Assembly: GCA_002269645.1 (NCBI GenBank)
Contig: NIVC01002933.1
Span: 62,001-126,000, forward strand
Direction of reading: 5' to 3'
Source: Macrostomum lignano
Lineage: Eukaryota
DNA length: 64,000 nucleotides
The notes under the pieces were generated by a model. That model did not search any database. It was not told the DNA's origin and saw nothing but the letters and a program-made list of their open reading frames with translations. Positions 20,791 through 61,150 of this stretch are shown here, in pieces (position 1 is the stretch's first letter; each line of letters starts with the position of its first letter). A program made the translations under genes and the position numbers.

Positions 20791-20997
20791 CGGTGGATCC
20801 GCCTATCGAAAAGCCGCCGCCACGCAGCTCAAGCGCAGACGTGGAAGACAGCCAATGAGAAATTGCCAAGCCATAAAGATAAACTGCTCACTGTCTCCAC
20901 GCAACGGAAGATGAACAGCGGAAGAGGAAATTTCCACTGCCTCGCCTAAATGAGCGGCAGCCTGAGATTTGCCGAGGAATTTCTTCGAGCTCTGAAA

Positions 20998-22530
20998 ATG
21001 TTATTCGGAATCATGTCACTTCTCTGTTGCACCGCCCTCGGTAAGTGCAACGCCGAATGTCAATTCTAAGCCCGTAATAGTCGCAGTTTCAACTCGCATT
21101 TCAAACCGATGGCTTGACTGACCTACCTCATGATATGAGAGACTAAAGCTCAATACTTTCGACTCAAACTGAAATTTCACAGGCTTGCAGCCAGACATTT
21201 CCAGCCGCTTCTTCGCCTTGGACCCCGGACCCGTCCGGATCGGCAACGCCTCCAGCAGCGAACTCGTCAACCTGACCGGCGTCAAGTCGCGGCTGCTGTG
21301 TCTGGCAGCGTGCCAGCGGAACGGCTGCCTGCTGGCTTCGCTCATCCCCAGCTCGAGCGTCTGCCAGCTGCTGCTGCTGAACAACGCGTCTCAGGCGCCG
21401 GGACCGGCCGGGACTCACGTGCAGAGACTCGTGGGCTCCGAGCCCGGCGCCAGGCTGTGGACGGCCGAGAACTTCACGGAGCTGATGAGGAAGAGGATGC
21501 TGAATGTCACCATTGAGCTGAGAAGTGAGTCACTCCACCTCATGGCTAGATGTCACTGCGATCTAAACACTCATGCTGTGCTTTGAGAGTCCAAATGGCG
21601 CCCTCTCTCACTGCAGACAGCGGCACGGGCAGGGCCGGCTCCATCCAGTCCGTGACGATCCCCTCGACCGGCTGCTACCGGATCGAAGTGTCGGGCGCCA
21701 GAGGCGGCACCAACTCCTTCTCAGGCAAGGCTGGCGGCAGCGGCGCCTTCGTGTCCGGCGCCTTCAACCTGACAGCCGGCACCCAGCTGAGCGTCGTGGT
21801 CGGACAGGCCGGCGGTCCGCCCAGCTCGAACTACAAGGGAGGCGGTGGAGGCGGCGGCAGCTTCGTGTACAGAACGGCAGACGAGCTGCTGCTGGCTGCG
21901 GCCGGAGGCGGCGGTGCTGGCACCTACAGCTCAGCTGGTGAGTCATTCTAGCAACTCAAACAGTGACCGAACGTGAGCATCATCATTGCCGCTTGAGTAG
22001 TGCAGAGCAAATTTTGATTTGTTTCAGGCCTGCCGGGCGAAGCCGGCCCGAATGGAACAGATGACACAGCGCCAAGCACGAGCCCCAAGAGCTACGGAGG
22101 CAGCAACGGACAGCCGGGCTTCAACAACCCGAGCGCCATGCCCACCAGCCACAACCACGGCGGCTGCGGCGCCGGCTGGCTGGGGAAGCCAGTGAACGCC
22201 AGGCGGGGGCCGAGCGATGGCGACGGAGGAGGCAGTCGGGCTGAAGGCTGGGTCGGCGGCGACGCCGGCGGCTCCAACACCGGCGACGGTGGGTTCGGCG
22301 GCGGCGGAGGCGGCGGCACGACGAACCCCAACTGGGGCGCTGCCGGGGCCGGCAGCGGCTTCAGCGGAGGCGGGGCCGGGTTCTACACCAGCCAGTCTGG
22401 AGGCGGCGGCGGTTCCTTCTGCTCCGGCAGCGGCTGCAGCGGCACCACGGGCGGCAACGCCGATCAGCACGGCCTGGTGTTCATCCGGCTGGTCCTGCCG
22501 CTGGGCGACTTCTGCGAGCACCTGACGTGA
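20998..22530 (+). CDS. Secreted protein: PAN/apple-like domain + ALK/LTK-type glycine-rich domain. Exons 20998-21040, 21183-21524, 21617-21937, 22028-22530; 402 aa
   Basis: Signal-peptide-like MLFGIMSLLCCTALG; CLAACQRNGC...VCQLL; IQSVTIPSTGCYRIEVSGARGG, GGGGGGSFVY, LLLAAAGGGG and GFGGGGGGG as in ALK/LTK Gly-rich regions. All three introns GT-AG phase 1; total length 1209 nt. Confidence 0.82.
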
Positions 22531-23002
22531 GGTGAGAAGGAATCTTCGCATCCTGCCCAAGATGCGTTATCGGGCCGTCCTACGCCCCTGACGAAGTTAA
22601 TAAGAGCAGTTTAAAAGCTGTTTTAATCGAACCTTGGATTGCTGATTGCCGAAATAGTGCTTTTTTCAAGCAGCTTTTTGAAGAAATAAAATCTTCGGTG
22701 CAAATTAGATTTGAGAAGCTCGGTTTTGTTTTTATTATTTTCTGCCTTTTCTTTCTCAAGGTCTTCCCACTGCATACTTCAGTTCTCGTTACTTTTCCTC
22801 TACTGAGCGACTTGCTTCCAGCTTTCAGAATTCAAAGCTGGGTGGCCGAGCGACTCCCGCTCCAAGGATCAAGGATTCGGCCGCGCATTCATTCATGTAC
22901 TTTCGATTTAGATAGCCTGTTGTAAATCTCTATGCAGACAAAGAGGTGTCCCGGTTTATTTTTGGAGTTCCAATGGGAGTCCCAAAGCCCCTGAATTGTA
23001 AG

Positions 23003-23819: not shown

Positions 23820-26800
23820 TCAAAATGCAGTCTGATGAAATGCGTTCGCAGCAAGCCAAGGAAGCTCCAGAGAGAAGGCGTTCCCGCCAGCATCCCCGAC
23901 AAGCAGCAGAGGCCGGTCGGTGGCTGTGAGGTGCAGCCCCAGGGTGGTCACCTCGTGGCCGTGCTCGAAGTGAGCAACCTGAGTGGCAGGGGCGGGTTAG
24001 AAATTGGCGAGAAGTTTGATTAGAAGCGAAACGAAAAATGACTGCACGATGCCTGACCTCAGCCAGCTGATTGACCCCGCTCTGCATGCGCCAAACGCTG
24101 ACTTTCCCTTGAGCAGAGGCCGTGGCCAGGAGCGGCAGGGCGCCCGTGAGGTCGCTCGTCAGCAGGCTGATGGCTCGTATCGGCCGGGTGTGGCACTGCG
24201 GAAAGGGAGACAAATCGCAGGGAGATCGGGGTGAGTTCGGTGTGAGATCAGGGTGAAACCGGGGTGAGATCGGGGTGAGATCGAGGTGAGATCGGTGTGA
24301 GATCGGGATGAAATCGGGGTGAGATCGGGGTGAGATCGTGATGAGATCGGGGTGAGATCGGGGTGAGATCGGGGTGAGATCGGGGTGAGATCGGGATGAG
24401 ATCGGGGTGAGATCGGGGTGAGTTCGGTGTGAGATCAGGGTGAAACCGGGGTGAGATCGGGGTGAGATCGAGGTGAGATCAGTGTGAGATCGGGATGAAA
24501 TCGGGGTGAGATCGTGATGAAATCGGGATGAGATCGGGGTGAGATCGGGGTGAGATCGGGGTGAGATCGGGGTGAGATCGGGGTGAGATCGGGGTGAGAT
24601 CGGGGTGAGATCAGGGTGAGATCGGTGTGAGATCGGGGTGAGATCAAGGTGAAACCGGGGTGAGATCGGGGTGAGATCGGGGTGAGATCGGGGTGAGATC
24701 GGGATGAGATCGGGGTGAGACCGGGGTGAGATCGGGGTGAGATCGGGGTGAGATCGGGGTGAGACCGGGGTGAGATCGGGGTGAGACCGGGGTGAGATCG
24801 GGGTGAGATCGGGTGAAACCGGGGTGAGATCGGGGTGAAACCGGGGTGAGATCGGGGTGAGATCGAGGTGAGATCGGTGTGAGATCGGGATGAAATCGGG
24901 GTGAGATCGGGGTGAGATCGTGATGAGATCGGGGTGAGATCGGGGTGAGATCGGTGTGAGATAGGATGAGATCGAGGTGAGATCGTGGTGAGATCGGGGT
25001 GAGATCTGGGTGAGATCGGGGTGAGATCTTGTGGAGGTTCTGGGTGAATTTGGTGAGAAATGGAAAACATCCTCAGTTTCAGAATTGAACTTCAGCCTGC
25101 AGCAACTTGAAACAATAATTTTAGGTTAGAAATTCAGACATCAGATATTAAAAAGAAACGATTCACCATAAAACCCGTCAAGACGGGATGAATTTTGGCA
25201 TCGGAGCCGAGTTTAACGATGGAGATCCGATTGCGACTTTGACACCGAAACGCCACAATGGCAACTCCGGGACCGCAGCCTGCAGCGCACGCCTGAATCA
25301 CTGGAGAAGCATCCGCCGCCATCTCGTCGAAGCACTGGAAGGTTCGCCAGCCGCTGACAGCCATCCTGCCGTCCTGAGCCGTGTGCAGCTGAGCGGAGCG
25401 GAGCACAGGGCTACTGAGCTGGCGGGCCAGCAGCCACCCGGGCTCCAGAATCCGCAAAAACATCGGCGGGCCAGCCAGAGGGTCGAAACCGGTGAGCCCA
25501 ACCAGCGGCTGAAGACCTCCTTCGGCTGGCACCAGTGCGAGGCTTCTATCGGTGAGAGCGACAATGGCCTGAGCAGATTCGGGAACTGCGCACATGACCG
25601 CCACAGGTGAGTTGCTTTGAAGCAGCTCCGCCTCTCCAGTGCTCAAAAGGTGCTCCAGCTCAGCATCAGTGTCGCACAGATACCCCTCCGGGCACCGGAG
25701 TCGCACGAGTCCATTCAGATTCTCCCAGCCGGCCAACAGAATGTCAGATGCCGGAGACACCAGACAGATGATTGGACCCCAACTCGCAGGGGCCCGGACT
25801 CGACTCTGGAGACGCATTGAGTCGAGGTGCCACAGCACCGCGATTCCGTCCGCGCCTCCCGAAACAAAAATCTGATGCCCGTCTAGAGAGCAGGCAGACG
25901 TGACTCGGCCAGCATGACCCCGACTGAAAACCAGCTCGGACAGCAGCTGATTAGGCCCGCTCAGTATTCGGACAGGCGAGTCGGCAGCAATGGGGTTGCA
26001 AATTGGCTAAAAATGTGGAATGAGTTTAGTGACAGGACTTTCGACTAAGTGAATAAAGGTGCGAATGAATATACGCAAAGTCGCTCACATTCTGCAACTG
26101 CAGAGCTCCACCCAACGAATACGGCCTGTGAAGGAACGATGAAGAGCTCATCGGCGATTCTAGCGGATCTTGGCCGGGGTCTCGGGGCACCGAGGTCAGT
26201 TGTGCGTCGTGTCGGCTTCGGTCGCCAACAGGAACGTCCATGGCCTGCCGTCGGCCACTGAAAACAGCTGACCAGTGATGAAGAGCAAACTGCTAGCATG
26301 CTGAGTAGCAGTACATAAAATTTGTCTCAATAATAGAATCCATTGACCCTACACCATACTGACATACCAGAATTCGAATGAGCTATCGCTGCTTTGAGTT
26401 TCGAGTCCATGAGCTCAAGGTGAGAGTCCATGCTTTCCCTGTAGTGCCTCTCCAGATCGGACCTGCGCACCATCGCCCTGCAGCCCAGGTGAGAGTACTT
26501 GCACTCTACCGGTCTCTCGGGACACTCCGACAGGTGAGCAACATATCCCCGCCTGTCCATCGGTGTGCTCCGCTCCGAGCAGTGAGGACAGCGAGCTGAG
26601 AATCTCGGACAGCACACATCGGACTGCAGATTCCTGTGACTGGTCTCCATCTCGCTGTGTGTGACCAGCTGAGAGCACAGGTCGCAGGTCTCCTTCCTGT
26701 GGCGACACTCGCTGCTGGTGTGTCGCTGCATGTCCTTCTTCAGGATGAGCTCTTTGCACTGCTCACAGCGGAGTGAGTGCCAGTCGCAGCTCTGTTGCAC

Positions 26801-27178
26801 ATGCTGGTCCATGCGAGCCCATTCGAGTTGGACAGAGCAGCCGGCGTCGCAGTTCGGACAGCGGACTCGCAGCTTGGCGACCTCGCGTCTCGTCGCCATG
26901 TCGGGAAAGCAGGTAGCCCAGCTCACCTCGACCTCGCCGCCGCCGCCGCCGTCCTCCTCCGAGTGGTGGTCTCTGAGTGTGCAGGCCTCGGTGTGTCCGG
27001 GACAGGGCCGCTTCTCCACCTCGTGCAGCAGGCCGGTGACGCAGGCCTGGCACAGGCGGCACCCATGCGGAGTCTGTCGGGCGTTGAAGAGCGGCTTGGA
27101 GCAGCTGCTGCACTGCAGGTGAGCCGACAGATCGGAGACCGGCCGGGCGGCCGACACAGTCGAGGGCAGCTCGGACAT
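23820..27178 (-). CDS. TRAF-like copy 5 fused to WD40 repeats (chimera B). Exons 27178-26368, 26267-26089, 26006-25167, 24195-24058, 23978-23820; 708 aa, intact
   Basis: Exon lengths 811+179+840+138+159 = 2127 nt with no internal stop found; GT-AG introns. WD40 motifs SRGHAGRVTSA..FVSGGADGIAVLWH, CHTRPIRAI..LATASAQGKVSVWR and LLVGDAGGNA. Exon boundaries are homologous to chimera A. Confidence 0.8.
24221..25027. repeat. 11-bp satellite (GAGATCGGGGT)n inside intron 3 of chimera B
   Basis: Tandem units between the donor at 25166 and the acceptor at 24196. Confidence 0.95.
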
Positions 27179-28726
27179 GGCGGTTGAAGCAGTGAACTGC
27201 AAGTTCTTTCTGTTCCTTGCTAAGCCTTATATAGGCATTTTCTAGTTTAGAGGGTCAATTGCTTTACAAGGTTCTACCTGAGCTCTACAATACTCCCTAC
27301 GGATTTCAACTGCACTGCAGTTTACTTCTGAATAGGCTTTTTTATAGCGCGTAGTTGCTTCCTTGTTAAAGGCGGCTCATGCTGCTTCTATTTTTAGGCG
27401 TTATGATTTAAGGTACTGGTTTATTACTCAATTTTGCCAGTATGTCTGTTTGGTTTCTTCTCGTGAAGTTTTCTGAAAGTTCAGACTTTTTATTTATGAA
27501 TAATTTTATCTATTAAAAATAAAAAAAACTTTATGCTTAGGGGTAGTACATTTTCGAAACCAAATTACTTCTCCTTAGCCAAATGATATTGCGACGTCAC
27601 TCCTATGAGCAGACACAAAACACCGCATCGGTGTATTGCTATCATACTCGTATGGCTATAGAAAATCAAGTTTTTTGACTGTCTATAGCATCAGTTTCTA
27701 CCAACGTAATAATAATTCCTCCCCAGTCTCACAGTCTCCATGAAGCTGCAGTAAAGAGCATGGTAGCCTTTGTTCTAGATCGCTAAGTACGAGTATACAG
27801 TATTTAGGAGCGCGCCGGATCCATATACTAAAAATTCAATCTAAAATGCATTCTGCTTGGTGCACTGCCTACAAAACAACCTGGATCGAGCCGTGTGCTA
27901 TTTTTATCACGGCGTGTGATCTATTTTTGGAAACATCAAACACAACTCTAATAAATAATAAATAACATAATAAAACATACATAATAAATAGAACATAATA
28001 AATAAACTGCAATGATTTTGTCTGATTGTCAAAAGCGTCGCAGCAGTTTTTGGGAGACGGCTACTCGTTGCCTCCTCTTCTGGCTGTCATCCAGATGATG
28101 CAGCACCCACCAATCGCTCAGTGACCCTCTGTAGACCCAGGTTCTCTGTAAGAATGCTGTATGATGCTGTATGAAGGAATTCCGCTGAGTTCTGCCATTT
28201 CGATTTCCAGTAGACCACAGATGAGCTCGATTTTGCTCTTGGTCCCCACTTTCCGGGGCCTCCCAGATCTCGGCTCGTCCAGGGTCGAAGTGCAGCCGCT
28301 CTTGAAGCGGTCGTACCGCTTGTACTCAGCTCACTGGCACGCTGCATTCTTGCCGGTGGACTTGCACAGCCGAAGTTTCTTGCAACCATTCACTTTTTAT
28401 TTGACACCGTCTTGGCTTCAGCTTCTTGCTTGGCTTCCTACAGATCCATTTATTCAAACAGCAGTTTGATCTTGAATAATGGAAATACGAGCGTATATTT
28501 TAGACGATTTTACATTTTTGTCTACTTCCCACTGGTCCTCCCCACCTCCGCGCCATCCTCCGCCGCACGCCATGTGGTTTTTAACCTCTCTTCTTTTCAG
28601 CCTTGGCCTTGGTGCTGCGTTCCATTGTTTGGAATTTTATCTGAATGTTTACAACTTATTGAAAAATTTTCCTTTAGAAACTGGAGTCGGCTCGGGTGCC
28701 TGAACTTGAAGGCAGAGAATTTGACG

Positions 28727-29179
28727 AGCTACAGAGGGGGCGCCAGCTACAGAGGGGGCGCCAGCTACAGAGGGGGCGCCAGCTACAGAGGGGGCGCCAG
28801 CTACAGAGGGGGCGCCAGCTACAGAGGGGGCGCCAGCTACAGAGGGGGCGCCAGCTACAGAGGGGGCGCCAGCTACAGAGGGGGCGCCAGCTACAGAGGG
28901 GGCGCCAGCTACAGAGGGGGCGCCAGCTACAGAGGGGGCGCCAGCTACAGAGGGGGCGCCAGCTACAGAGGGGGCGCCAGCTACAGAGGGGGCGCCAGCT
29001 ACAGAGGAGGGCGCCAGCTACAGAGGGGGCGCCAGCTACAGAGGGGGCGCCAGCTACAGAGGGGGCGCCAGCTACAGAGGGGGCGCCAGCTACAGAGGGG
29101 GCGCCAGCTACAGAGTGGGCGCCAGCTACAGAGGGGGCGCCAGCTACAGAGGGGGCGCCAGCTACAGAGGGGGCGCCAG
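28727..29179. repeat. 18-bp minisatellite (AGCTACAGAGGGGGCGCC) x~25
   Basis: Nearly perfect tandem units. Confidence 0.97.
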
Positions 29180-30723
29180 TTCATAAGGGTGTCTCCGCAG
29201 ACTGAGATGTCGCTGACCTGTTGTCAGCACTGCTGAGAGTGAGAGCTGCTGCACCTGCCTAGGGACGTACGACTCTGATGATAGTAGTATTCATATCATT
29301 TTAGCGGTGTTTGCTATTTGGTCAAAATAGTCATTGACCATTTTGATGACTAATGCTTGTACATATGTTTGCCCAAAATGACATATGTTCTATTTTTAGA
29401 CAATTCACAAAAGCAAAGTACGAGCGTAATATAATAATTCACATAGTTTTCTTTTCATTTCTTTCACGTGGTCTTTTTTCTCTCTGCACCCATTATTTAA
29501 GCCAAGTGTTGCTCTTACGTTTGACATTGAAAAACTCGCTTGCTGTTTAAAAGAATCCTGCGGCTGTTTGGGTTGGCAGAAGATCGACTCTTTTAAATTT
29601 CAACATTCATAGTTTTATAATCAATCGTAGTTTAGAAACAAAGCAGTTTGTGATTAAAGTCACAATAATCTTAATCAGGTAACTGACTAGAATTAGGCTA
29701 TAAATTTTATCTATCAATTGCTCGCGAGTCTCATGTACGACGTACTCGCTTCATTTTTGAGTAAAGAAATACACTGCAGTTTGGGAAGTTCCTTCAGTGA
29801 AACGGTGAAACTTGATTTCTTTGCCTAAATGAGCTTGGTTGGCTTTTTAATTTTTTCGATGCCAATAGTTTTATTATTCAATGTCTTTATTTTATATACT
29901 TTTTTATCTTTTATGCCGCGAAACTGCGGACTTTTGTGTCTTGGATTTAACTAGGTTAATTGGAACAGAAACGACACTTTGTTAAAGTATTTAGAATTTT
30001 TATTAAGCAATTTATAATAGTTGTTGTCAGCTGCCAGAACAGCAGAGGTCACAGCAGCCTTTCGGCCCTTTCGGCTCTCTTTTAGGCTTCTAAAATCCTG
30101 ACTCACTGACAGGTATCAACTTTGTTGCCATATCAATAGGAAATCATCTTCACCTGCCTCCAGGAGAAGTTCATAAAGATTTTGCAGTAGCTCTTGAGGA
30201 TCTCCGCTTCTTCTTAGTCGATTTATTGTGCCATCTTGCGATACCCGACGGTTGAGCAGCTGCGTCCAGCTTCTCAGCATAAGCCTTCATCTCACAGTTT
30301 TAATTAGTTGTAGCTAGCCCCGATTTTGCAACTTCGAAACTGTTAGATAGAGATTATTAAATTCCCACAAGACGCTGCAATATTTCGTATTCAGCACAAA
30401 AACGATAGTGTGACAAATTTTTAACTCCTTAAAAATCAATTACGTTTTTTGTTGGATGAAGTCTGGTGAAAACGGCAAAAATTTTATGAATATTTGATAT
30501 AATGGCATGACACTAGTAACAGGCCAAGTTTACCTACACGAATTTCTAAAAAAAATTGTGCCAAAACGAGTCATGAGCAAGCTTTCGTGTTTCATGGACT
30601 CGGCACGCAGCTAAAAAGGAGCATTGCAGCGTTTGATGACAAAAAACAGAGCCACACCCTTTCACAAAAACGCCTAAAGTTTTTAAAAGAAGACTTCTCA
30701 CTTTTCAGCAGAACACATGCGTC

Positions 30724-32315: not shown

Positions 32316-32700
32316 GTCGGCCTGCACTGAGGTCTCTCCAGTGTGCACTGCCCACCTACATTGTAAGTCGGCACTGAGGTCTCTCCAGTGTGCACTGCCC
32401 ACCTACATTGTAAGTCGGCACTGAGGTCTCTCCAGTGTGCACTGCCCACCTACATTGTAAGTCGGCACTGAGGTCTCCAGTGTGCACTGCCCACCTACAT
32501 TGTAAGTCGGCACTGAGGTCTCCAGTGTGCACTGCCCACCTACATTGTAAGTCGGCACTGAGGTCTCCAGTGTGCACTGCCCACCTACATTGTAAGTCGG
32601 CACTGAGGTCTCCAGTGTGCACTGCCCACCTACATTGTAAGTCGGCACTGAGGTCTCCAGTGTGCACTGCCCACCTACAGTGTAAGTCTGTCTGAAGTCT
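32316..32700. repeat. 45/47-bp minisatellite, ~8 copies
   Basis: GTCGGCACTGAGGTCTCCAGTGTGCACTGCCCACCTACATTGTAA tandem units. Confidence 0.95.
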
Positions 32701-33139: not shown

Positions 33140-34115
33140 AGGCTTCTGAGCATGAACCTTGACATCTCAGCAACTCTCCCGATGAGCCACAAAATTTTAA
33201 TAGTACCTCCATGAGCATTGAGATCTCAGCAATTTCCCACTTGAACATTGATATTTCAGCAGTTCTCACTGACCCACAGAATTTCAGAGATTTCCCCATG
33301 AAGCCTTGACGTCTTGTAGCAATTCCCCCCACGAGCCTTGACATCCTAGCATCCCCCCACAAGCCTTGACATCCTAGCATCCCCCCACGAGCCTTGACAT
33401 CCTAGCATCCCCCCACGAGCCTTGACATCCTAGCATCCCCCCACGAGCCTTGACATCCTAGCATCCCCCCACGAGTCTTGACATCCTAGCATCCCCCACG
33501 AGTCTTGACATCTTAGCATCCCCCCACGAGCCTTGACGTATTGTAGCAATTCCCCCCCCCACGAGCCTTGACATCGTAGCATCCCCCACGAGTTTTGACA
33601 TCCTAGCATCCCCCCACGAGCCTTGACATCTTAGCATCCCCCCACGAGCCTTGACGTATTGTAGCAATTCCCCTCCACGAGCCTTGACATCGTAGCATCC
33701 CCCCACGAGTCTTGACATTCTAGCATCCCCCCACGAGTCTTGACATTCTAGCATCCCCCACGAGTCTTGACATCTTAGCATCCCCCCCACGAGCCTTGAC
33801 ATCTTAGCATCCCCCCACGAACCTTGACATCTTAGCATCTCGCCATGAGCCTTGACATCTTAGCATCTCGCCATGAGCCTTGACATCTTAGCATCTCGCC
33901 ACGAGCCTTGACATCTTAGCATCCCCCCACGAACCTTGACATCTTAGCATCTCGCCATGAGCCTTGACATCTTAGCATCTCGCCATGAGCCTTGACATCT
34001 TAGCATCTCGCCATGAGCCTTGACATCTTAGCATCTCGCCATGAGCCTTGACATCTTTGCACCCACCCATGAGCCTTGACATCTTTGCACCCACCCATGA
34101 GCCTTGACATCTTAG
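33140..34115. repeat. ~28-bp minisatellite (GAGCCTTGACATC(C/T)TAGCATC...) with a positional gradient of variants
   Basis: Tandem units; degenerate units at the 5' end. Confidence 0.92.
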
Positions 34116-35113
34116 AACCCTAAACCTAGCCCAAACCCTGCCGAGAGTGATAGAATTTCAGCAACAGCCGCCAGGAAATGGAGATCGGAAAATTTCTGAT
34201 CGAACGGGGCAAGTTTTATGAAATTTTGTTGAGCCGTTTTTCTCTGAAATCAATCACATACCTACCTATATACCCAGATAGATAGAGAAAACTCATTTTA
34301 GTATACCGGTTATGTTAAGGCTAATCACATTTATATGTAGACTTTAAACCTTTTTTATCATCCATTAAAAGTGTGGCCCAGTGAATGTTTACGCTCGTAT
34401 TGCATTATCTTCTGCTTAAGTAGTCCTTGCTATTAATACTATTTTATTTTATGATTACTCATTACTGTTCCCCACTCTCATCTTAAAAAAGCGATTTGTC
34501 GGCCAGCTACTCAGACGAGCCGCTCATTCTAAATTTTTATTTAGAATGAGCAGCTTCATGCCTTCAGGCCTCGCCTGAAATGAGGCCTTCAGGCCTCGCC
34601 CAGAACTGAAAAAAACACAGCTCACTTGTCCTGTTTATCTGGCACACGAAGCTTCACTCGTGGCGGGGTTCTGAGATTCTAAAAATAGAACTTGCGTTTC
34701 CAGACAGGCAATTTGACTGAAATGAATTGAATGTACACTGCATGTGTGGGACTGACAAGTACATGTATACTGGGTACGTGTTGGAGTGTACATTTGGAAC
34801 AGGACGTATCTTATTTCCCTACCCACACGTACAATATAAGCTAGACTTATAATAAGCAAGATATTTGTGATGTTCAAATTAATGGAATTTTCCACAACTA
34901 GCAGACATTTCCGTCACGTGAATTTTAGTCATAAAAAGCATGATTGCTCTTTATTAATTCTGTCAGTATAGAAAAGAGCTGAAAAAAGCCGAGACTGGCT
35001 CGCATTGTTCACTAACAAGTGAACCTAAAGTAAATGCGACATCAGCCAAGTGAATTCCTGCGACAGCTTATCACAAAAGCAGGGTTTTATCCAGCGGCAC
35101 CTCCAACTCATTG

Positions 35114-35869
35114 ATGGTCAGAAGCTTCCAGAACACCCAGCAGTCCTGGTGGGTCCCAGTCGGTCGCATCTCCAGCCAGGCTGAGGCCCTGTCCCAGGCT
35201 CAGCTGTTTGAGGCCCGTCATCCGGGACTAAAGTACACTGGCAGCTGGAACTCCGCCCCGAACTCAAAGCTCTGCTCCATCGAGGTCGCCTCCGCGGGGT
35301 CAATTATTGTCTCTCTGGGCGCCACCTCCAGCCGCAGAGATGCGCAAGACAAGGCTGAAGCCTTCATCGCAAAGCATCCCTACCTGAAGTGGACAGCCAG
35401 CTGCTCAGAGCTCGGCTGGCTCCAGAACTTCCAGATTGTGGTCGAAGCTTTCCTGCCCACCGAGTGGCACATGAAGGAAGGCACAGTTGGGATCTGCCTA
35501 CCAGTGACCACCAGCCTGCGGCTGAGGAACCTGACCTCCGAGAAGGTGACCAGGATTACTGCAAGGGGCTTGGAGCCCAGCGACTGGGGCCAGCGGCGGC
35601 CCTGCCTCCAGTTCTCCGACGGGCATATCGCCGAGCGAGGCGTCCTGGAGAAGGAGCTGGACGTGAACTTCTGGAGCCACACGGCCAAGCTGGCGGTCTG
35701 GCTCGGCTTCCAGAGCGGCCGCTACCTGCAGTTCCAGGTGAACAGCCGGCTGGCCATCGACAGCTCGGCGAAAAATCATTGGAAATTCTCCTCTGGAGCT
35801 GGCCTGTCGGTTTACCACAAGGTGGAACCCGGAGCCCGCCTGCTAGAGGTGGTCGTGTGCGACTCATGA
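35114..35869 (+). CDS. Intronless protein: two MVL-like (mannan-binding lectin) repeats + ~130-aa beta-rich C-terminal domain (paralogue 1)
   Basis: Repeats VPVGRISSQAEA...HPGLKYTGSW...CSIEV and VSLGATSSRRDA...HPYLKWTASC resemble Microcystis viridis lectin (GPLWSNAEA...FTGQW...VVEV). Collinear with 40818-41585. Family call is by eye. Confidence 0.7.
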   Translation: MVRSFQNTQQSWWVPVGRISSQAEALSQAQLFEARHPGLKYTGSWNSAPNSKLCSIEVASAGSIIVSLGATSSRRDAQDKAEAFIAKHPYLKWTASCSELGWLQNFQIVVEAFLPTEWHMKEGTVGICLPVTTSLRLRNLTSEKVTRITARGLEPSDWGQRRPCLQFSDGHIAERGVLEKELDVNFWSHTAKLAVWLGFQSGRYLQFQVNSRLAIDSSAKNHWKFSSGAGLSVYHKVEPGARLLEVVVCDS

Positions 35870-36937
35870 CGCCGCACCGCTCAAAGACGCGCGGCACTTC
35901 TTGTACAAATGTTAAATAGGAGCGTAAATTGCCTGACAACTGACTTATTATAGTGTACGATTGATTTTATAATTTGTAAACAACGCTAAGCATACAATCA
36001 AAATACTTGACATTGTATTGTACTGTACAGAACAAAAATAGAAACGAAAATACACCTGAGAGCCATGTTTTTGCCACGGTCGCAGCTCTCTACCGCACGG
36101 ATTTTCCATGGAAAAAACTTTGGTTATTGTACAGTTCCAACAAATCATGTGACAGAAATGTCTATTTTAAGCAGCCGCCAGCCAGAGCAGCCAGGCCAGG
36201 CGGACTGCGACCTGAAGTTGGCTGCCGAGCTCGAACTCAACTCAAGCAGGAAGCAAGTGCGTGGCTTCTCTGTTATAATCATACTTCAGTATTTGCTGAA
36301 AGGGATAAAAAATTAAGCTCAGCATCGCCCACTGCACCTGCGCTCCCATCGCCCACCCTGCCAGCCCCGGGTCTCCAGGTTGAAAGCAGCCCCAACAGAA
36401 AGTACATCTGCGGGAAATTTCATGAATAATCGCTGGAGGGTTTGGGCTACACTCGCAAATCACAATAAGGGCTGATGAAGGATGCAGGAGGGCTGTGGGG
36501 CACCCTGTTGCAACGCTCTCGGCGGCATCGCCTGCACAACCCAACCAGCGCTGAGGACATTCTGCCCATTCCGCAGACTCCCAAGCAAATACAAGCGCGC
36601 CAATACCACACACAGGCACGCACTCGTGCACTCAGCTCACACAGGGTGTAGCGTGTACCGGGTGTACATCGTTGGCTGGCCCTCATAAGTACCTCGTATG
36701 AATTGCATGACAATAACTCGAGAGGAATCGAACCAGGGGTCGTGACACGAATCAGACGCGTTTAATGCTGAGCTGCTCTGTCTGATACCTGAACTGAGCG
36801 AATAACTGATGACAGAGAGCTCAAATTTTATCCTTTAGCCGGCACAGAAACTCGCCATTTGCAGTGAAATATCGACAGAAAGGAAAACTCAGGTAAAGTT
36901 GCTCGCTTGGCAAGTATGATGAATAGGAAGGCAAAAA

Positions 36938-37343
36938 TCAACAATAAATTAATTTAATTGAACTACGCGTTTCGCACGATACTGTGCATCTTCAGGTTTA
37001 TTTTTGAGCGAAAGAAACGAGTGAGATCGGCAGTAAATAAATACAAAATTTCGGGGTGCAAATTCAATCAATATTTTTGAATTTGTTCTCCGTGTGTTCT
37101 GAGGGAGGGGACACTGTATGTACATTATGTACTTCAAACTATATCGCTATCATTCCGTCCCTGGACTTTTCCTCTCGACTTTTGGACCAACAAACATGTA
37201 CTTCAAATATTGATTGAATTTGCACCCCGAAATTTTGTATTTGTTTACTGCCGATCTCACTCGTTTCTTTCGCTAAAAAATAAACCTGAAGATGCACAGT
37301 ATCGTGCAAAACGCGTAGTTCAATTGAATTAATTTAATGTTGA
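36938..37343. repeat. Fold-back / MITE-like inverted repeat, arms ~135 bp (36938-37076 and 37204-37343)
   Basis: GAACTACGCGTTT..GATACTGTGCATCTTCAGG..CGGGGTGCAAATTCAATCAATA recurs in reverse complement; no clear TSD. Confidence 0.8.
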
Positions 37344-37713
37344 AAGGAAAACTATTTTTAGTCCTGAAAACTGAATGCCCTGCCGAGTTGCCGCCTCGCG
37401 AGTTTACAGAACCGCAGAAAATGATAGAATCGTGCTGGAAATACATCAAGCACGATCAATTTTAGAGTAGCCATTAGAAGTTTTCAGTAAAATTGCAGAC
37501 TTGATCTACTATAAATACCCAAAAAGCTATTAATACCAAAATTTGTGCCTCAAAATTCCTATTTCTGCTTCATATAAAACTATGGAACGATTTTATTGCA
37601 GGTAATTTAAATATTCCGTCTTCGATCCCTCCCTGTCTGGGCACCACGCTCATAAAAAAGATTTGCATGCCACTTTTAAATTGCAGTCTGACTCTTAGGA
37701 CGTTTGGACAACA

Positions 37714-38924
37714 ATGTCGGAGCTGCCTTCGAGTGTGTCGGCTGCGAGGCCGGTCTCCGCTCTGCCGGCTCACCTGCAGTGCAGCAGCTGCTCCAAGCCG
37801 CTCTTCAACGCCCGACAGACTCCGCACGGGTGCCGCCTGTGCCAGGCCTGCGTCACCGGCCTGCTGCACGAGGTGGAGAAGCGGCCCTGTCCCGGACACA
37901 CCGAGGCCTGCAAAGACCACCACTCGGAGGAGGACGTCGGCGGCGATGTCGAGGTCGAGGTGAGCCGGGCTACCTGCTTTCCCGACATGGCGACGAGACG
38001 CGAGGTCGCCAAGCTGCGAGTCCGCTGTCCGAACTGCGACGCCGGCTGCTCTGTCCAACTCGAATGGGCTCGCATGGACCAGCATGTGCAACAGAGCTGC
38101 GACTGGCACTCACTCCGCTGTGAGCAGTGCAAAGAGCTCATCCTGAAGAAGGACATGCAGCGACACACCAGCAGCGAGTGTCGCCACAGGAAGGAGACCT
38201 GCGACCTGTGCTCTCAGCTGGTCACACACAGCGAGATGGAGACCAGTCACAGGAATCTGCAGTCCGATGTGTGCTGTCCGAGATTCTCAGCTCGCTGTCC
38301 TCACTGCTCGGAGCGGAGCACACCAATGGACAAACGGGGATATGTTGCTCACCTGTCGGAGTGTCCCGAGAGACCGGTAGAGTGCAAGTACTCTCACCTG
38401 GGCTGCAGGGCGATGGTGCGGAGGTCCGATCTGGAGAGGCACTACAGGGAAAGCGTGGACTCTCACCTTGAGCTCATGGACTCGAAACTCAAGCAGGCAG
38501 CGATAGCTCAGCAGAGTCCTTGTAAGAACTGATGTCAAAATCAGTAATATAATCACGCAGAAGATGCTGTTCTGTGGTTTAATTTTTTTTCCTATTTTTA
38601 GCAGCCGCCGTGCCGCAGTCTTATGTAGGTTCCGCAGCTCCCGCCGCCGACGGTCGCGATGTGGCCGACGTGAAGCGGCGAGTCGGCAGCGTCTTCGAGC
38701 AGTTTAAGAAGCTGCAGGTCAACGTGGCGAACTGGGCTCACAGCACCATGGAGCTCGAGCAGCTGGCTGACAGGTTCGGAGGCGTCTCGCAGCTGCGGAC
38801 TCTGCTGAGCGGACTGGACGAGCGGACGAGGAGCGTCGAGCAGCTGCAGCAGCAGGTGCAGCAACTCCAGCAGCAGGTGCAGCAACTCCAGCAGCAGGTT
38901 CAGCAGGCGCAGAGCAGTCAATAG
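37714..38924 (+). CDS. TRAF-like copy 7: RING + ZF + coiled coil. Exons 37714-38521 and 38602-38924, 376 aa
   Basis: T|GTAAGA donor, TTTTTAG acceptor; in-frame deletion after the RING (EACKDHH instead of EACTLRDHH). Confidence 0.9.
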
Positions 38925-40817
38925 TTTTGACTGATGAACTGAATTCACATTGGAAGCTGATGTATGAGATTTCGGCAGCGTGATGCACTCGAGTGTTGAT
39001 GCAATCCATGTCTCTTGGATCCTTTGACTTACAAAATTCTGCTTTTGCGGTTAAGGAGACCTTCTATTGGAACTTTTTTGATGCCAGCTGAAGCCGAAGG
39101 TGCTGCAGTCTGGCGGAGCCGACTTGATGCTGTAGTAAGGCTCACAGCGATTTTTTTCGGCAAGGAAGATCCAACCTTCCGTATTAGCTGATTATCCCAC
39201 CACAGAGGCTGCCTCACCTGACAGAAGATCTATCCTATACCCATCATTTTTCTCATTGTATAAAACCATTGGACTTGATTTTGTACATCTTATCCAATGA
39301 AATTTTGGAAAATTGCGACATTGCGACTTGTTATTGCATTAGTTCGTGGGTCTGCGGGGGACTCTGAAAGAAATCAAGGCCCATCGGACCCTCAGAAAGC
39401 GAGGACGCGTGCCAGATCCTCTACCAGGTCCTCTGCTCGAATCTTTAACTTACAATTTATTCAGGAATTAAGCTTTCTGCTTCACTGCGTTTTCGTTATG
39501 TGTGCTTTGTGGGCGGCCGTAGGCCGCGTACAAAGTGTGTTAGGGGTGGCGGGGTGGCGTGTGCGTTGGGGGGGTTGTCGCGGGGCGGCTAGCTTTTAAC
39601 CCCCAGCTTGTGCTCTGCTCGCGGTGTCGCACACCTGCTCGACACTCGTCGAACAGCCAGGGGTTGCTCCCCTGCTCGCTGCTTTGTGCCCACGTTCTGC
39701 GTTCGGTCTTCGTCACTCGCCTAACCCCTAAGTACTTCTTAAATTCTTCAAATAGCTTAAAATTCTTTAGTGACCATGCATGGTCTCTATGCATGACTCT
39801 GCAGCAGTCCGACCGCTTGGTAATTTTGTTTTTCATGCGCCCCCTGCTGCGGCTACGCGTTGGCTGGTGGTTAATTGTTTTCAATAGTCAACCTCCTTGG
39901 TATTTCGCATACTATAATCTCTAAGGCAAAAGTGCATTTTTGCATGGTTTGGAATGTGTCAAACAACTAAACCTAATATGGAAGTCGCGGTGTTACAGCA
40001 CCTGTTATCAGAGTTTCATCAGAAATAAATCAAAACCAAATACGACGTAGGCAAGTCTCTTGACTGCACGGATTGCCCCCGTGGCATGCGCGTACAATTT
40101 GCTTATTCATGTATACGAGCCAGCTCTATTTAAGAAAAGCGACCTTTGGATCGGGGCGTCTTCCGCCCGGTGCTAAATTTTTGGAGATCGAGGTGAGTGA
40201 CGCATCTCTTGCAACTCTTGCAAAACTATTTAATAGTTTATTTTCTGTGCTAAATCCACGAATGTAGACGAAGAAAAGATTGGTCAGATCACAAAAAGTT
40301 TTTTAAATACTACTCTGAGGTGAGAGTGAGAATTTTCACGAGAATTAATAGACATTACAGACTTGTCTCGACTTTCGTGCTTATCTTATTCTTCTGTTCT
40401 CACCTCTCTGTTTACTGTGCTCTCTCTCTGCTTAGTTCAATCTGATTCTTCTTATTATCGTCTCTTTCTTTTTCTCACTTCTGACAGTCTCTTCCCACTC
40501 ACTAGTTTATTTAGTCGATCTTTATTTTCATCGAAGTCAAAAAAGCTCAAGACTTGTTTTTGCCCTCACGTCTTTTTCTACAAATGCACACACTGGTAGT
40601 GTAGCGGATTGCTGGTGCAGTGCTCGTGGCTCACTCACAGAGATTTGCTCGTATTGTTCAAACTGTCAGAGTCAGTGCACCAGATCGAGCATTTTATATA
40701 TGGTCATCACGTCTGCTGCAAACCATGTTAGATACAAGACAGGGAGTAGTACCCTGCAGTAGTACACCGGAACTGAATTAATTGTGACTGGTTTCCGCTC
40801 TCCTACTCACCCAGGAC

Positions 40818-41585
40818 ATGGTGCTCACCCTCCCAGTCCCGCCGGCCGTGCGCTGGACGGTACAGCTCGGCCCCGTAACTGACGCATCAGACGCGAATTC
40901 GAAGGCGCTTGCCTACATGGCGGCGAACCCGGGCCTGCGGTGGCTGGGCTCCTGGAAGGCCATCCGGGACGGCAGGCTGACCGAGATTGAGGTCTCGTCT
41001 GAGGGGAGCATCGTGGTGTCCGTTGGAAGCACATCCGACAGTCGGGATGCGAAAAGCAAGACTGAGCTCTTTCTCAGAAAGAAGCCGTACCTAAAGTGGA
41101 TCGGAGACTGCACAGCCGCTGGTTGGCACGAGAACTTCGAGATCCTGGTGGAGCCGTACCTGCCCAGCCAGTGGCCTATGCAGGGGGGCACCGAGGGCTC
41201 GTGCCTGCCCGTGCAGATGCAGCTCAAGATAAAGAACGCGACGCCAGAGGCCGTTACTCGAGTTGTCGCGTGGGTCCTGGATGAAGAAGAGTGGGGCGCC
41301 AGGTCGCCGTGCCACCAGCTGACGGGATGCAGAATCGCAGCCGGCCAGAGTCTGCAGAGGCAGCTGGACCTCAACTTCTGGCACTGGTTAGCCCAGTTCG
41401 GCCTGCGGCTAAAATTCCAGACTGGCCGGTGGCTTGAGTGCGAAGTCAACGGCAGAATTGCCATAGACTGCGCCGCGGAAAAGAGCTGGAGCTGTAGGTC
41501 GGACCGCCCGGGTCTGTCCGCCTGCCCCCTGCCGCATCCGGACTCGCAGCTGCTGGAGCTGCTGGCAGTGCCAGAGCGCGTCTGA
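40818..41585 (+). CDS. Intronless MVL-like tandem lectin + beta-rich domain (paralogue 2), 255 aa
   Basis: VQLGPVTDASDA...NPGLRWLGSW...TEIEV. Aligns end to end with 35114-35869 (e.g. PYLKW, CLPV, LDxNFW, RxAID), roughly 40% identity by eye. Confidence 0.75.
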   Translation: MVLTLPVPPAVRWTVQLGPVTDASDANSKALAYMAANPGLRWLGSWKAIRDGRLTEIEVSSEGSIVVSVGSTSDSRDAKSKTELFLRKKPYLKWIGDCTAAGWHENFEILVEPYLPSQWPMQGGTEGSCLPVQMQLKIKNATPEAVTRVVAWVLDEEEWGARSPCHQLTGCRIAAGQSLQRQLDLNFWHWLAQFGLRLKFQTGRWLECEVNGRIAIDCAAEKSWSCRSDRPGLSACPLPHPDSQLLELLAVPERV

Positions 41586-46322: not shown

Positions 46323-48017
46323 TCACGCCACAGTTTTTGACACTTGCGTCACAGTAAGCGGTAGCGAACCTACGGAGGAGCAAGTCGCCTTCCGCCGAGA
46401 GCTTGCCAGCCTGTACAGCAGGTCGACCAGCTCGGCGATGATCGCGATGGACAGCCCGCACCAGATGCCGCAGATGCTGCCCACCTGGCACAGGAAGACA
46501 GCCGGAGTGGTGATTGGAGTCTGGCGAAAGCTCTGCAGCATGAAGGGGTTTCTGCTTACCTCGGCCATGAAGGCCCGTGGTCGAGAGACGTTGGAGCAAA
46601 GCTTCTCTGCTGAACTCTTCGAGCTGGCGTTGGTCAGCAGGGCGGCTTCGACATCCGAGATCCCGGCGCCCTGGTAGTTGACCTCGTAGATGGCCTGCTC
46701 CATCACGCAGCGCTGGAGATCATTCATGGGGACGTAGCTGGCACCCGAGACCGTGGCCGGGAACCAGAACTCTCGGCAGGAGCTCTCGCAGTTTTCATCG
46801 TAGACCTGAGACGAGCTCAGGACGTCGTCAACGCAGAAGTCCCTTTTGGAGAAAGCTTCAACTGAGTCGTCTGGTGTGAAAGCGTTGCATCGCATCGTGC
46901 GGTCCGTCAGGTTCAACAGGCCGATGTCGAGAGTACAGTTGCATCGCCGATGCACTTCTTTGCGAATCGCCTGCACTATGCACATCTCTTTGGTGTACTT
47001 AAAGTGCCGGTGCCGCACCGTTCCGTTGTCTACGCGGTACTCTGTCGACCATCCAGACAGGCTGTTGCACTTCAGCCTTTGCAGCCTACTCTGAGTGAAC
47101 TTCACCTGGTTGTAGTAGTTGCTTGGCAGTAGCAGTCTGTTGTGGGTAAAGGGCACCTCTAACTCGCTGTGCAGGTCGAAAACAAAGCCATTGGTGGAAG
47201 TGAGACCGTCGATGGGGAATCCAGTTGAAAAATGATTGTCAGTTGACGAGTTGGTGGCGTTTGCTGCGTCCGGAGCGGTCGGAATCACCAGAACAATTGA
47301 CTGGGTGAGCTTGGACAATGCGGCTGGCAAAGTCACTGTGTAGCAGCTGAGGTAGTCTGGATGGTGGAATGGCACGAGAGTGTAATCGCTGGGCACCAGC
47401 CAGATCACTCTTCCTGTCACCTGCAGCATGCGAATGATGGGCGCCCCGATGCTTGCTCTCAGACTGGAGACTTCGTGCAAGCTTCTATTGGCCCGCGACA
47501 GGGTTCCCAGCACAGTGGCTATGTAGTTTCTGAAGCTCTCGATGAGAAGCAGGAAGCCTCTGTCAGCGCTTGGATGCCTCAGATAGAACTTCTGCACGCG
47601 ATCGCGAACGTGGCTAGAAAATTCGGCCGGAGTGAGGACTCGGCCGGCCGACAGGTAACTGAGTGCGCTTTGACTCAAGCGCGTCCCGTCGCAGTAGGAC
47701 ACGCTGGGGAATGGCTGGTTCGCGCTGGAAGCGAAGTGCAGATCAACAAGCAGGTCGCCCTTGACAAAGTTCAGAGTCAGCAACGTCAGGTGGCAGGTCA
47801 TGCCCGCAAAGCAGGCCAGCACAAAGCAGGTCCAGAACGCGCGCAGCAGGGCGCTGTCTGAATGAACCGTCCGACGCAGCGATCGAATGGACGATTCGGC
47901 AGCGAACTGGGTCAGGTACGAGGATATCGGTGAGGCGTGCTGCATTGAGGAGCGTTCGGTTGCACTTGCGGAGCCAAGCCTTTTTCTGTTAGGCAATCTA
48001 CCCTGTCTTGAATCCAT
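46323..48017 (-). CDS. DEG/ENaC (amiloride-sensitive sodium channel family) subunit, single exon, 564 aa
   Basis: TM1 RAFWTCFVLACF, FPSVSYC, Cys-rich thumb (YTKEMC..CNC..C..CESSC), TM2 FLCQVGSICGIWCGLS with GxS filter. Confidence 0.9.
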   Translation of the reverse strand: MDSRQGRLPNRKRLGSASATERSSMQHASPISSYLTQFAAESSIRSLRRTVHSDSALLRAFWTCFVLACFAGMTCHLTLLTLNFVKGDLLVDLHFASSANQPFPSVSYCDGTRLSQSALSYLSAGRVLTPAEFSSHVRDRVQKFYLRHPSADRGFLLLIESFRNYIATVLGTLSRANRSLHEVSSLRASIGAPIIRMLQVTGRVIWLVPSDYTLVPFHHPDYLSCYTVTLPAALSKLTQSIVLVIPTAPDAANATNSSTDNHFSTGFPIDGLTSTNGFVFDLHSELEVPFTHNRLLLPSNYYNQVKFTQSRLQRLKCNSLSGWSTEYRVDNGTVRHRHFKYTKEMCIVQAIRKEVHRRCNCTLDIGLLNLTDRTMRCNAFTPDDSVEAFSKRDFCVDDVLSSSQVYDENCESSCREFWFPATVSGASYVPMNDLQRCVMEQAIYEVNYQGAGISDVEAALLTNASSKSSAEKLCSNVSRPRAFMAEVSRNPFMLQSFRQTPITTPAVFLCQVGSICGIWCGLSIAIIAELVDLLYRLASSRRKATCSSVGSLPLTVTQVSKTVA

Positions 48018-48789: not shown

Positions 48790-49560
48790 TTTCACTGCAT
48801 AGTTTCCAATTAGCTCTGGCGTGCAGCCGGCGACACCCCCTTTCCCTCGAGCTGTTCGTCCTGCCTGCTGATGGACTGCGTGCTCCGCAGGACTATGCAG
48901 GAAGAGGATGTCTTTGTAATCCCCAGCGCCGCAGCTCGCGGCATTCTGAGGTCTGAACCTCCTGCCTGGCCTATGCTGACGACATAGCCCTTGTCTGCTG
49001 CGGCCCAAAGTCAGCACAGAGAGCGACAAACGTACCAGCTCTTCGAGGAGGTGCCCGCGTGGATTTGCAGATCAGCGCCAAAAAGACCGAGGTGCTCCAT
49101 GTGGGCACTGAGACTGCCCCGCCTCAGCCGCTGCCCAATGGGGAGACAAGAGCCGCCTACCAGGACTTAAATACCTCGGCGTCCCGGTCATGCGACCCAG
49201 TGTCATCATTCAGGACTGGCTGCAGCAGACTTGGCGTGCCTCCCACCAACTCGGCAGTTTTTCCGCTCAGCAACAACACTAATATTCTGCTGTTCAGGAG
49301 AGCTGTGGAGCCCATCCTGCTCTATCGGCTGGAGGCGGTCCGCACGACAGCAACCCGCTTTGCTGCTCTGAACGCCTAGTACCGTACCATCGACTGCTGC
49401 GCAACTCTCTCGGATGCCGCTACCCAGAGTTGCTGAGCAACGAGCAGCTGGCGGCCCGATCGCAAGCACCGCCCCTGAGCCGACTGGCCCTGGTGAGCCG
49501 CTTTTGGGGGGATGCCTTCCCTCTAGCCTCCCTGATGCTGCACGACCCAACGAAGTCAAA
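48790..49560 (+). mobile_element. Degenerate non-LTR retrotransposon (LINE) reverse-transcriptase relic
   Basis: LAYADDIAL at ~48966, then (G)LQISAKKTEVL and a frameshifted KYLG; multiple frameshifts. Confidence 0.8.
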
Positions 49561-60060: not shown

Positions 60061-60327
60061 AGTAGTATAGAAAAAGACGCTTCTAGACCCAGAGCACTTT
60101 TTTAATGACCGTTTTAAGGGTCTAGAGGGGGGACACGGGGGGTAAATAAAAAAACACATCTAAACACCCTTAACACATCTAATCACCCATAATCACCCCT
60201 GACAATAAAAATCATTCCCAACACTTCCAAACACTCCCCAACACTCCCCTCGCGTCCCCCCTCTTAAGACCTTACAAACGGTCATTAAAATAAGGTCTGA
60301 TCTAGAAGCGTCTTTTTATATACTACT
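60061..60327. repeat. Imperfect terminal fold-back: ~80-bp arms 60061-60142 and 60246-60327
   Basis: AGTAGTATAGAAAAAGACGCTTCTAGA...TCTAGAAGCGTCTTTTTATATACTACT. Confidence 0.9.
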
Positions 60328-61140: not shown

Positions 61141-61150
61141 CAATATAAAA

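Follow-up and report, generated by a model that had tools for sequence, protein, structure and literature searches.

Hemolytic lectins such as CEL-III and LSL combine a ricin-B module with an aerolysin-like or CEL-III pore module and are self-sufficient pore formers; actinoporins form their pore with an N-terminal amphipathic helix, and aegerolysins have sphingomyelin/cholesterol or ceramide phosphoethanolamine as lipid targets. Aegerolysins are lipid-binding β-sandwiches that resemble actinoporins and form pores only with MACPF or Toxin_10 partners, and secretion in the absence of a signal peptide is documented for at least one well-studied member (PMC9505663); the same source reports them from bacteria, fungi, plants, protozoa, some insects, and viruses. 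MVL, the mannan-binding lectin of Microcystis viridis, is a free-standing protein of 113 aa that forms homodimers with four glycan sites; a cleft at the end of each domain accommodates the Man3GlcNAc2 core (PMC3407925). Here we describe two genes, W1 and W2, within a 64,000-nucleotide stretch of the Macrostomum lignano genome (assembly GCA_002269645.1, contig NIVC01002933.1, positions 62,001 to 126,000 of the forward strand; hereafter the window, in whose coordinates positions are given), the products of which are predicted to join an MVL fold to an aegerolysin/actinoporin-type sandwich. We favor, with slightly better than even confidence, the reading that W1 and W2 are old paralogous, independently transcribed genes with one coding exon each, encoding leaderless, soluble ~28-kDa proteins of MVL fold plus sandwich that act as partner-requiring membrane-lipid binders.

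35114 to 35869, plus strand: W1, complete single-exon coding sequence (CDS), 251 aa plus stop (open reading frame (ORF), paralogy to W2, full-length alignment to the relatives P0025, P0002, P0003, and P0035, identical copy in the second genomic locus L005)
40818 to 41585, plus strand: W2, complete single-exon CDS, 255 aa plus stop (ORF, 43% identity to W1, dN/dS against the L005 copy)

Each of the described systems resembles W1 and W2 in part. Like MVL (PF12151; structures 1ZHQ and 1ZHS), both proteins contain tandem strand-helix-strand-strand units of ~50–54 residues; unlike in MVL, the tandem occupies the N-terminal half of a longer chain, falls below Pfam detection, and has lost most of the invariant positions. 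The aegerolysins ostreolysin A6/pleurotolysin A, Cry34Ab1, AfIP-1A, and RahU provide the best structural matches to the C-terminal domain and are similar in size (~120–140 aa); however, they are free-standing small proteins, whereas the W1/W2 sandwich is fused behind the MVL-fold tandem and has no detectable sequence relationship to them. Actinoporins (PF06369: sticholysin II, fragaceatoxin C, equinatoxin II, Fav, and HALT-1) belong to the same β-sandwich class as the W1 C-terminal domain, but the W1 model lacks an amphipathic helix ahead of the sandwich, and no PF06369 match was found in Pfam. The hemolytic lectins share with W1/W2 the joining of a carbohydrate-recognition-type module to a membrane-acting module, although the folds differ on both sides and W1/W2 have no obvious pore-forming segment. 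Our literature search found no report of aegerolysins or actinoporin-like proteins in flatworms.

W1 and W2 align end to end with 43% identity (BLASTP E 1e-72), and both begin with Met-Val, a start conserved in their alignment; the listed W1 ORF opens with TTG at 35111, and we took the ATG at 35114 as its start. Each protein comprises two internal repeats of ~50 aa followed by a C-terminal region of ~125 aa. The N terminus carries no hydrophobic segment (9-residue hydropathy maxima within the first 30 residues of 0.4 for W1 and 1.4 for W2), and a hydropathy scan found no transmembrane-like window in either protein. The region shared with the relatives is one uninterrupted ORF in each gene, with no internal intron, and both genes end at the same domain boundary, directly past the sandwich. 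An earlier note, made from the sequence alone, had described two leaderless, intronless paralogues of ~250 aa with two ~50-aa repeats and a C-terminal domain; these features were confirmed at the positions it gave, and the C-terminal motif that it quoted is present in the alignment. Direct Pfam and NCBIfam scans returned no match for W1 or W2, W1 matched no PDB sequence, and tblastn found no third copy in the window. An ORF pattern of this kind is far beyond chance. The GC content at third codon positions (GC3) is 0.80 for W1 and 0.79 for W2, compared with 0.77–0.78 for neighboring TRAF exons, 0.72 for a DEG/ENaC (ASC) gene, and an overall window GC of 0.48, and similarity between the two loci is confined to the coding parts, with none outside the CDS. 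Because GC3 is host-like, only the CDS is conserved between the loci, and W2 shows a low dN/dS (below), W1 and W2 appear to be real, host-like coding genes.

A second genomic copy of the region provided a test of selection on W2. L005 is a 32.7-kb segment of the same M. lignano assembly (GCA_002269645.1, NIVC01000672.1:44605-77298), collinear with 30.5–56.3 kb of the window at 90–98% identity. The M. lignano genome shows hidden tetraploidy and additional duplicated chromosomes (PMC5704211; PMC8629364), and this, together with the collinearity at that level of identity, indicates that the window probably represents another haplotype or homeologue of L005. Both ORFs are intact in L005 (W1 at 7326-8078 and W2 at 13093-13857). 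The two W2 copies differ at 18 nucleotides (2.3% of sites), of which 13 are synonymous and 5 nonsynonymous by the Nei-Gojobori method, yielding a dN/dS of 0.117 (binomial p 2e-5); W2 is thus under purifying selection. The W1 CDS and the ~110 nt directly upstream are identical in L005, and the 800 nt downstream contain two mismatches (window 35004-36669), so the W1 comparison is uninformative on selection. The DNA further 5′ of W1 is only ~95% identical between the two copies. Such patchy identity of W1 and W2 to L005 points to recent gene conversion or to mosaicism of the assembly or of haplotypes.

To place the N-terminal half, we combined repeat alignments, profile searches, and structure models, which define the following units:

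35144 to 35293, plus strand: W1 MVL-like repeat 1, aa 11–60, strand-helix-strand-strand (AlphaFold, repeat alignment, hhalign)
35300 to 35449, plus strand: W1 MVL-like repeat 2, aa 63–112 (repeat alignment, hhalign, AlphaFold)
40851 to 41000, plus strand: W2 MVL-like repeat 1, aa 12–61 (alignment to W1)
41007 to 41156, plus strand: W2 MVL-like repeat 2, aa 64–113 (alignment to W1)

The AlphaFold model of W1 places strands at residues 11–17, 39–47, and 54–60 and a helix at 22–35 in the first unit, and strands at 63–70, 91–100, and 105–112 and a helix at 74–87 in the second. Direct comparison with PF12151 gave no match for W1 or W2 even at E ≤ 10 (gathering score 25 bits); among the relatives, P0003 scores 23.4 bits and P0001 16.9 bits, and P0035 has a precomputed PF12151 match. 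An exhaustive search of 1.84 billion representatives with a profile built from W1 and W2 yielded 22 matches: three full-length relatives (P0001/P0025, P0002, and P0003; E 7e-39 to 1e-20), 18 matches to the repeats only, and one to the C-terminal domain only (P0022). Those repeat-only matches that were scanned are PF12151 proteins (E 1e-13 to 4e-4 to the same profile), one of them a 114-aa cyanobacterial MVL-like protein (E 2.7e-4). Consistently, hhalign aligned the four window repeats with 13 classical bacterial and cyanobacterial MVL repeats at 96.2% (E 2.1e-9), and Foldseek ranked apo MVL (1ZHQ_A) first for the first W1 model (E 3.6e-3, probability 1.0, template-modeling (TM) score 0.46) and fifth for the second (E 2.3e-3, probability 1.0). 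The high root-mean-square deviation (rmsd) to 1ZHQ reflects a different mutual orientation of the two MVL units in the model. The profile, hhalign, and Foldseek results bear out the MVL-like tandem that the earlier note had proposed, although the direct Pfam match by which it had suggested checking the assignment was not obtained. On sequence profiles and the model, the N-terminal half is best described as an MVL-fold module homologous to MVL.

Its ligand is another matter. As a proxy for the glycan cleft we used nine MVL-invariant positions (G-P-x-W, A, T-G-x-W-x-T, and S). None of the four window repeats retains the first Trp (GPxW), and Cys stands in place of the second Trp in repeat 2 of each protein. 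P0025 has 8/9 and 9/9 of the positions in its two repeats, and the second repeat keeps 8–9/9 in three of the four relatives, all from environmental contigs. Because most of the invariant positions are replaced in W1 and W2, canonical glycan binding by these two proteins appears doubtful, and the high-mannose lectin of the earlier note, lacking both a direct Pfam match and most of the GPxW...TGxWxT...S positions, is not supported.

The relatives bear on where the family belongs. Four full-length relatives were found (P0025, P0002, P0003, and P0035), on environmental or SRA contigs. They start with a Met 3–5 residues before the first repeat, with in-frame stops 6–20 codons upstream, and all four extend past the sandwich into a conserved helical region of ~200 aa, which has hydrophobic transmembrane-like C-terminal helices in three of them (not in P0035); tblastn did not find this extension in the window. 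DEG/ENaC channels are a family typical of animals. The contigs of the relatives have very low coding density and microsatellites, and the one with P0002 (L002) includes a DEG/ENaC last exon (PF00858, E 1.4e-13); the full-length relatives thus seem to lie on eukaryote-like contigs that are probably animal. The best-scoring repeat-only matches share an HPxLxW signature with W1 and W2, and those with a known source or contig are eukaryotic or eukaryote-like (an Ectocarpus cluster, a 1.09-Mb low-density contig, and a Sina-RING fusion), whereas bacterial-type MVL proteins, with a signal peptide and Cys residues, score lower. Scans of metagenome and viral contigs returned no further family members. 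Two architectures among the matches are of separate interest. P0004 (L007) joins three MVL-type repeats to a RING finger of the Sina type (PF21362, E 3e-10). In P0022, a TPR-like helical stretch precedes the aegerolysin-like C-terminal domain, and MVL repeats are absent. Each module is thus found without the other in different architectures.

These data speak to the view, along the lines of the earlier note, that W1 and W2 are functional glycan-binding sensors or effectors recently acquired from bacteria, which would recognize high-mannose cores in the cytosol and be coupled to TRAF proteins in a defense island. The MVL homology is real, a signal peptide is absent, a 10-copy TRAF array surrounds the genes with a DEG/ENaC channel gene nearby, and MVL itself binds the Man3GlcNAc2 core (PMC3407925). 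However, the GPxW Trp is gone from 4/4 repeats, the second Trp is Cys in the second repeats, 3–5 of the nine positions are kept per repeat, and no direct Pfam match was obtained; GC3 equals that of host genes, the full-length relatives sit on eukaryote-like contigs, one with an ASC exon, and the best MVL matches are of the HPxLxW type, eukaryotic or eukaryote-like where known, with the bacterial types scoring lower. We therefore regard this explanation as a whole as unlikely. Recent bacterial acquisition in particular is not supported, because host-like GC3, the eukaryote-like contigs of the relatives, and the eukaryotic HPxLxW matches all oppose it, and we rejected it; horizontal gene transfer, which the earlier note had raised, is at odds with a codon composition equal to that of neighboring host genes and with full-length relatives on low-coding-density eukaryotic contigs, one bearing a DEG/ENaC exon. 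The homologues in what are probably other animals, to which that note had itself looked for an answer, likewise do not favor a recent transfer.

The C-terminal half was assigned from the W1 structure model:

35492 to 35866, plus strand: W1 C-terminal β-sandwich, aa ~127–251, predicted aegerolysin/actinoporin-like fold (AlphaFold, Foldseek)
41199 to 41582, plus strand: W2 C-terminal β-sandwich, aa ~128–255 (homology to the W1 domain; fold predicted from the W1 model)

With the two paralogues as the only input, AlphaFold modeled this half at a predicted local distance difference test (pLDDT) score of <35; with a seven-sequence alignment, the W1 model reached a pLDDT of 79.1 and a predicted TM score (pTM) of 0.70, with residues 130–250 mostly at 80–96. 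Residues 113–130, ahead of the sandwich, form a low-confidence linker without a helix (pLDDT 51–66). Foldseek against the PDB returned, in order, 6MYI, 4JOX, 9GKI, 4TSY, MVL, 5V3S (AfIP-1A), and more actinoporins. The top match was ostreolysin A (6MYI_A; E 1.1e-4, TM 0.50), followed by Cry34Ab1 (4JOX; E 4.5e-4, TM 0.65, rmsd 3.7 Å over 127 columns); AfIP-1A (5V3S_B) matched with E 3.2e-3 and TM 0.57, and several actinoporins (9GKI sticholysin II, 4TSY FraC, 1IAZ, and others) matched at probabilities of 0.99–1.0 and TM 0.42–0.51. A profile of the C-terminal domain had no match among PDB sequences. The model supports an aegerolysin/actinoporin-type β-sandwich at the level of fold only. Of the earlier suggestion that this domain is aegerolysin/actinoporin-like, the fold stands, through the top Foldseek matches, and family membership does not, since Pfam, the profile against PDB, and hhalign were all negative. 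Assignment to PF06355 was rejected, as neither hhalign to ostreolysin A6 (OlyA6) nor Pfam gave a signal.

We next consider the boundaries of W1 and W2 within the TRAF array. As the earlier note had observed, the two genes lie inside a TRAF cluster: between 194 and 53548, on both strands, the window contains 10 copies of an N-terminal exon encoding a RING and TRAF zinc fingers, 89–97% identical to each other and 93–97% identical to annotated M. lignano proteins. A coiled-coil exon follows in 6 of the 10 copies and closes with a conserved R-A-TGA in four of these six, the point at which similarity between copies stops; copy 7, upstream of W2, has its own stop nearby, and AATAAA follows soon after the stop in three copies. 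Annotated M. lignano TRAF proteins of 367–378 aa end in ...PRA and ...YRA, and copies 9 and 10 are convergent, with ~1 kb between their ends. The TRAF genes here thus appear to be MATH-less and to end at the coiled-coil exon. W1 lies 3.1 kb downstream of TRAF copy 6 and W2 1.9 kb downstream of copy 7, the coiled-coil exons of which end at 31966 and 38924, and each is on the same strand as its TRAF neighbor. W1 and W2, at 43% identity, are far less alike than the TRAF exons are among themselves, a difference that suggests concerted evolution confined to the TRAF exons. Two TRAF copies (11336-12076 and 26327-27202, both minus strand) are followed by WD40-like ORFs (9910-10893 and 25137-26006, both minus strand) in place of a coiled-coil exon; these neighbors suggest TRAF genes with exchangeable C-terminal modules. 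In L005 (1946-22694), the deposited models apparently link each TRAF N-terminal exon to a coiled-coil exon that belongs to the following copy, so that W1 and W2 sit unannotated inside the "introns" of TRAF models.

Two candidate splice acceptors precede the coding sequences:

35084 to 35094, plus strand: candidate acceptor (gttttatccag) ending 19 nt 5′ of the W1 ATG (conserved in L005; putative)
40795 to 40814, plus strand: CAG preceded by a polypyrimidine tract (tttccgctctcctactcacccag), with 3 nt between it and the W2 ATG, a candidate 5′ untranslated region (UTR) intron acceptor or spliced-leader (SL) acceptor (conserved in L005; use putative)

The W2 start context, tttccgctctcctactcacccag/GACATGG, is a good acceptor and is in frame with W2. 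For W1, an in-frame stop lies at 35051-35053, 20 codons 5′ of the ATG, and the best acceptor does not lead into the W1 frame. Trans-splicing at YTNCAG-type acceptors affects ~30% of M. lignano genes, and the SL ends in ATG (PMC8629364); the tract before W2 could be an SL or 5′UTR-intron acceptor, and an SL-borne ATG would be in frame.

This arrangement raises the alternative that the W1 and W2 ORFs are 3′ terminal exons, alternatively spliced to the upstream TRAF genes to give the domain order RING, TRAF zinc fingers, coiled coil, MVL fold, and β-sandwich, in which a lectin/lipid module would replace MATH as the sensor of an E3 ligase. Each ORF does lie on the same strand, 3.1 or 1.9 kb downstream of a TRAF coiled-coil exon; W2 has a strong, in-frame acceptor-like site 3 nt ahead of its ATG; several CAG/GTGCAG donor-like sites occur in the Q-rich coiled-coil exons; and the WD40-like ORFs after two other copies make the TRAF genes look modular. 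On the other hand, the R-A-stop is conserved in 4/6 coiled-coil exons, copy 7 has its own stop, and annotated TRAFs end there; Met-Val starts are conserved in W1 and W2; the W1 frame is closed 20 codons before the ATG, and the best acceptor of W1 does not match that frame; and among the matches listed from 1.8 billion representatives there is no TRAF-MVL fusion, the relatives starting at the MVL repeat. We consider terminal TRAF exons quite unlikely. Because the TRAF stop is conserved and annotated TRAFs end at it, W1 and W2 are best read as genes separate from the TRAFs. The intergenic distances (~1.9 kb ahead of W2 and, with minisatellites subtracted, ~2.0 kb ahead of W1) exceed the 1-kb operon criterion used for M. 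lignano (PMC8629364), so an operon with TRAF is also disfavored. The interleaving of W1 and W2 with TRAF genes is most probably a genomic neighborhood and not a gene fusion, and the proposed "defense island" is an observation on that neighborhood only.

How would two separate genes of this type act? In the reading that we favor, the sandwich would dock W1 and W2 onto particular membrane lipids, by analogy with aegerolysins, and the MVL-fold tandem, because its canonical glycan-binding motif is largely gone, would supply dimerization or multivalency and possibly a noncanonical ligand site. Most likely, W1 and W2 would act as membrane-targeting "binder" components, again as in aegerolysins, with a partner needed for membrane damage or signaling; as they lack both the helical region of their relatives and an actinoporin-type helix, they would be binders and not self-sufficient pore formers.

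Several observations weigh against this reading. The invariant MVL positions are kept at 5/9 and 3/9 in W1 and at 5/9 and 3/9 in W2 (repeats 1 and 2), which makes even the label "lectin" appear uncertain. The model of the W1 C-terminal domain depends on the seven-sequence alignment; Pfam, including PF06355, gave no match for seven C-terminal domains at E ≤ 10, and hhalign of this domain against OlyA6 returned 0.1%, that is, no signal. No MACPF or Toxin_10 partner was found in the window among the scanned ORFs and the list of ORFs of at least 150 aa, a scan that was partial and blind to introns. W1 and W2 are absent from the M. lignano protein sets searched, and a word-indexed search of a 15-billion-protein collection with W1 returned no match at all, to itself included; at the syntenic locus in L005, the gene calls list only TRAF models, the 9–12-kb spans of which cover both ORFs. 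Finally, neither AATAAA nor ATTAAA occurs within 600 nt of the W1 and W2 stops. The missing annotation and the lack of a canonical poly(A) signal in those 600 nt, together with the degenerate MVL motif and a length shorter than that of all four full-length relatives, would also be expected if W1 and W2 were decaying or nonfunctional ORFs, unexpressed relics of a longer gene that has lost its helical C-terminal region. We judge this highly improbable: both ORFs are intact despite having diverged to 43% identity, and are intact again in L005; W2 has a dN/dS of 0.12 (p 2e-5); GC3 is 0.80, like that of neighboring expressed-type genes; and W1 and W2 stop at the same domain boundary.

A broader scenario, which we consider improbable as a whole, would derive W1 and W2 from an undescribed animal family composed of a leaderless MVL fold, an aegerolysin-like sandwich, and a helical membrane domain. 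The Macrostomum lineage would have split off the binder and kept it beside MATH-less TRAF E3 ligases (and a DEG/ENaC gene, cf. L002) as an intracellular sensor of exposed membrane lipid or glycan, whether from damage or a pathogen, that feeds ubiquitin signaling.

The remainder of the window contains other genes and elements. An intronless 564-aa DEG/ENaC (ASC) gene lies at 46323-48017 on the minus strand, 4.7 kb from W2 (PF00858, E 9e-30); on L002, the ASC last exon (5861-6199, plus strand) is 2.5 kb from the P0002 gene, with no other ASC exons recognizable between them. The proximity of ASC sequences to both W2 and P0002 may represent conserved linkage or nesting, or chance in ASC-rich genomes. 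Between the ASC gene and TRAF copy 9, a reverse-transcriptase fragment occupies 48957-49376 on the plus strand (PF00078, E 6e-4). ORFs with an ALK/LTK-type glycine-rich domain (21550-22922, plus strand; PF12810, E 3e-9) lie in GC-rich DNA with strong AT skew and are an unrelated gene within the TRAF array. Tandem arrays or minisatellites at 19250-20869, 24435-25070, 28412-29236, 32324-32688, and 33294-34115 look coding, with several open frames on each strand; they include SLLSLCCLSAV / RETAERQQRDS, HPDLTPISPRS, ASYRGG, a 45-bp unit repeated 8 times, and a 28-bp unit repeated 29 times, the last two of which separate TRAF copy 6 from W1. At the right-hand edge, 60697-64000 (plus strand) holds a compact run of small same-strand ORFs with a GC of 29–40%, against a window mean of 48%; several products have Gly/Ala-rich membrane-like segments. 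The last ORF extends from 62573 to the end of the window; PF02945 detects an Endonuclease VII motif in it (E 1e-7), and inspection by eye shows YADFEA and HNGSGYDFHF, which resemble the exonuclease motifs of protein-primed DNA polymerases. This run appears to be the border of an inserted Polinton/Maverick-like or virus-like element. Adjoining the low-GC element is a 336-aa piggyBac-type transposase ORF (59149-60159, minus strand; PF13843, E 4e-38).

We found no description in the literature of an MVL fold combined with an aegerolysin/actinoporin-type sandwich, and the combination seems not to have been reported before. The M. lignano gene calls that we inspected lack both genes, which fall there inside the spans of chained TRAF models, an annotation gap. 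So far, MVL has counted as a lectin of cyanobacteria or other microbes; W1 and W2 place its fold inside animal genes, and the matches point to a wider, unnamed set of eukaryote-type MVL-repeat proteins, one of them fused to a Sina-type RING. In pore-forming toxins, sandwiches of the aegerolysin/actinoporin type recognize the lipid, and they also serve as lipid probes; their fusion to a lectin fold in W1 and W2 is a new arrangement that may provide novel specificities for lipids or glycans, or a two-component cytolysin of a new kind.

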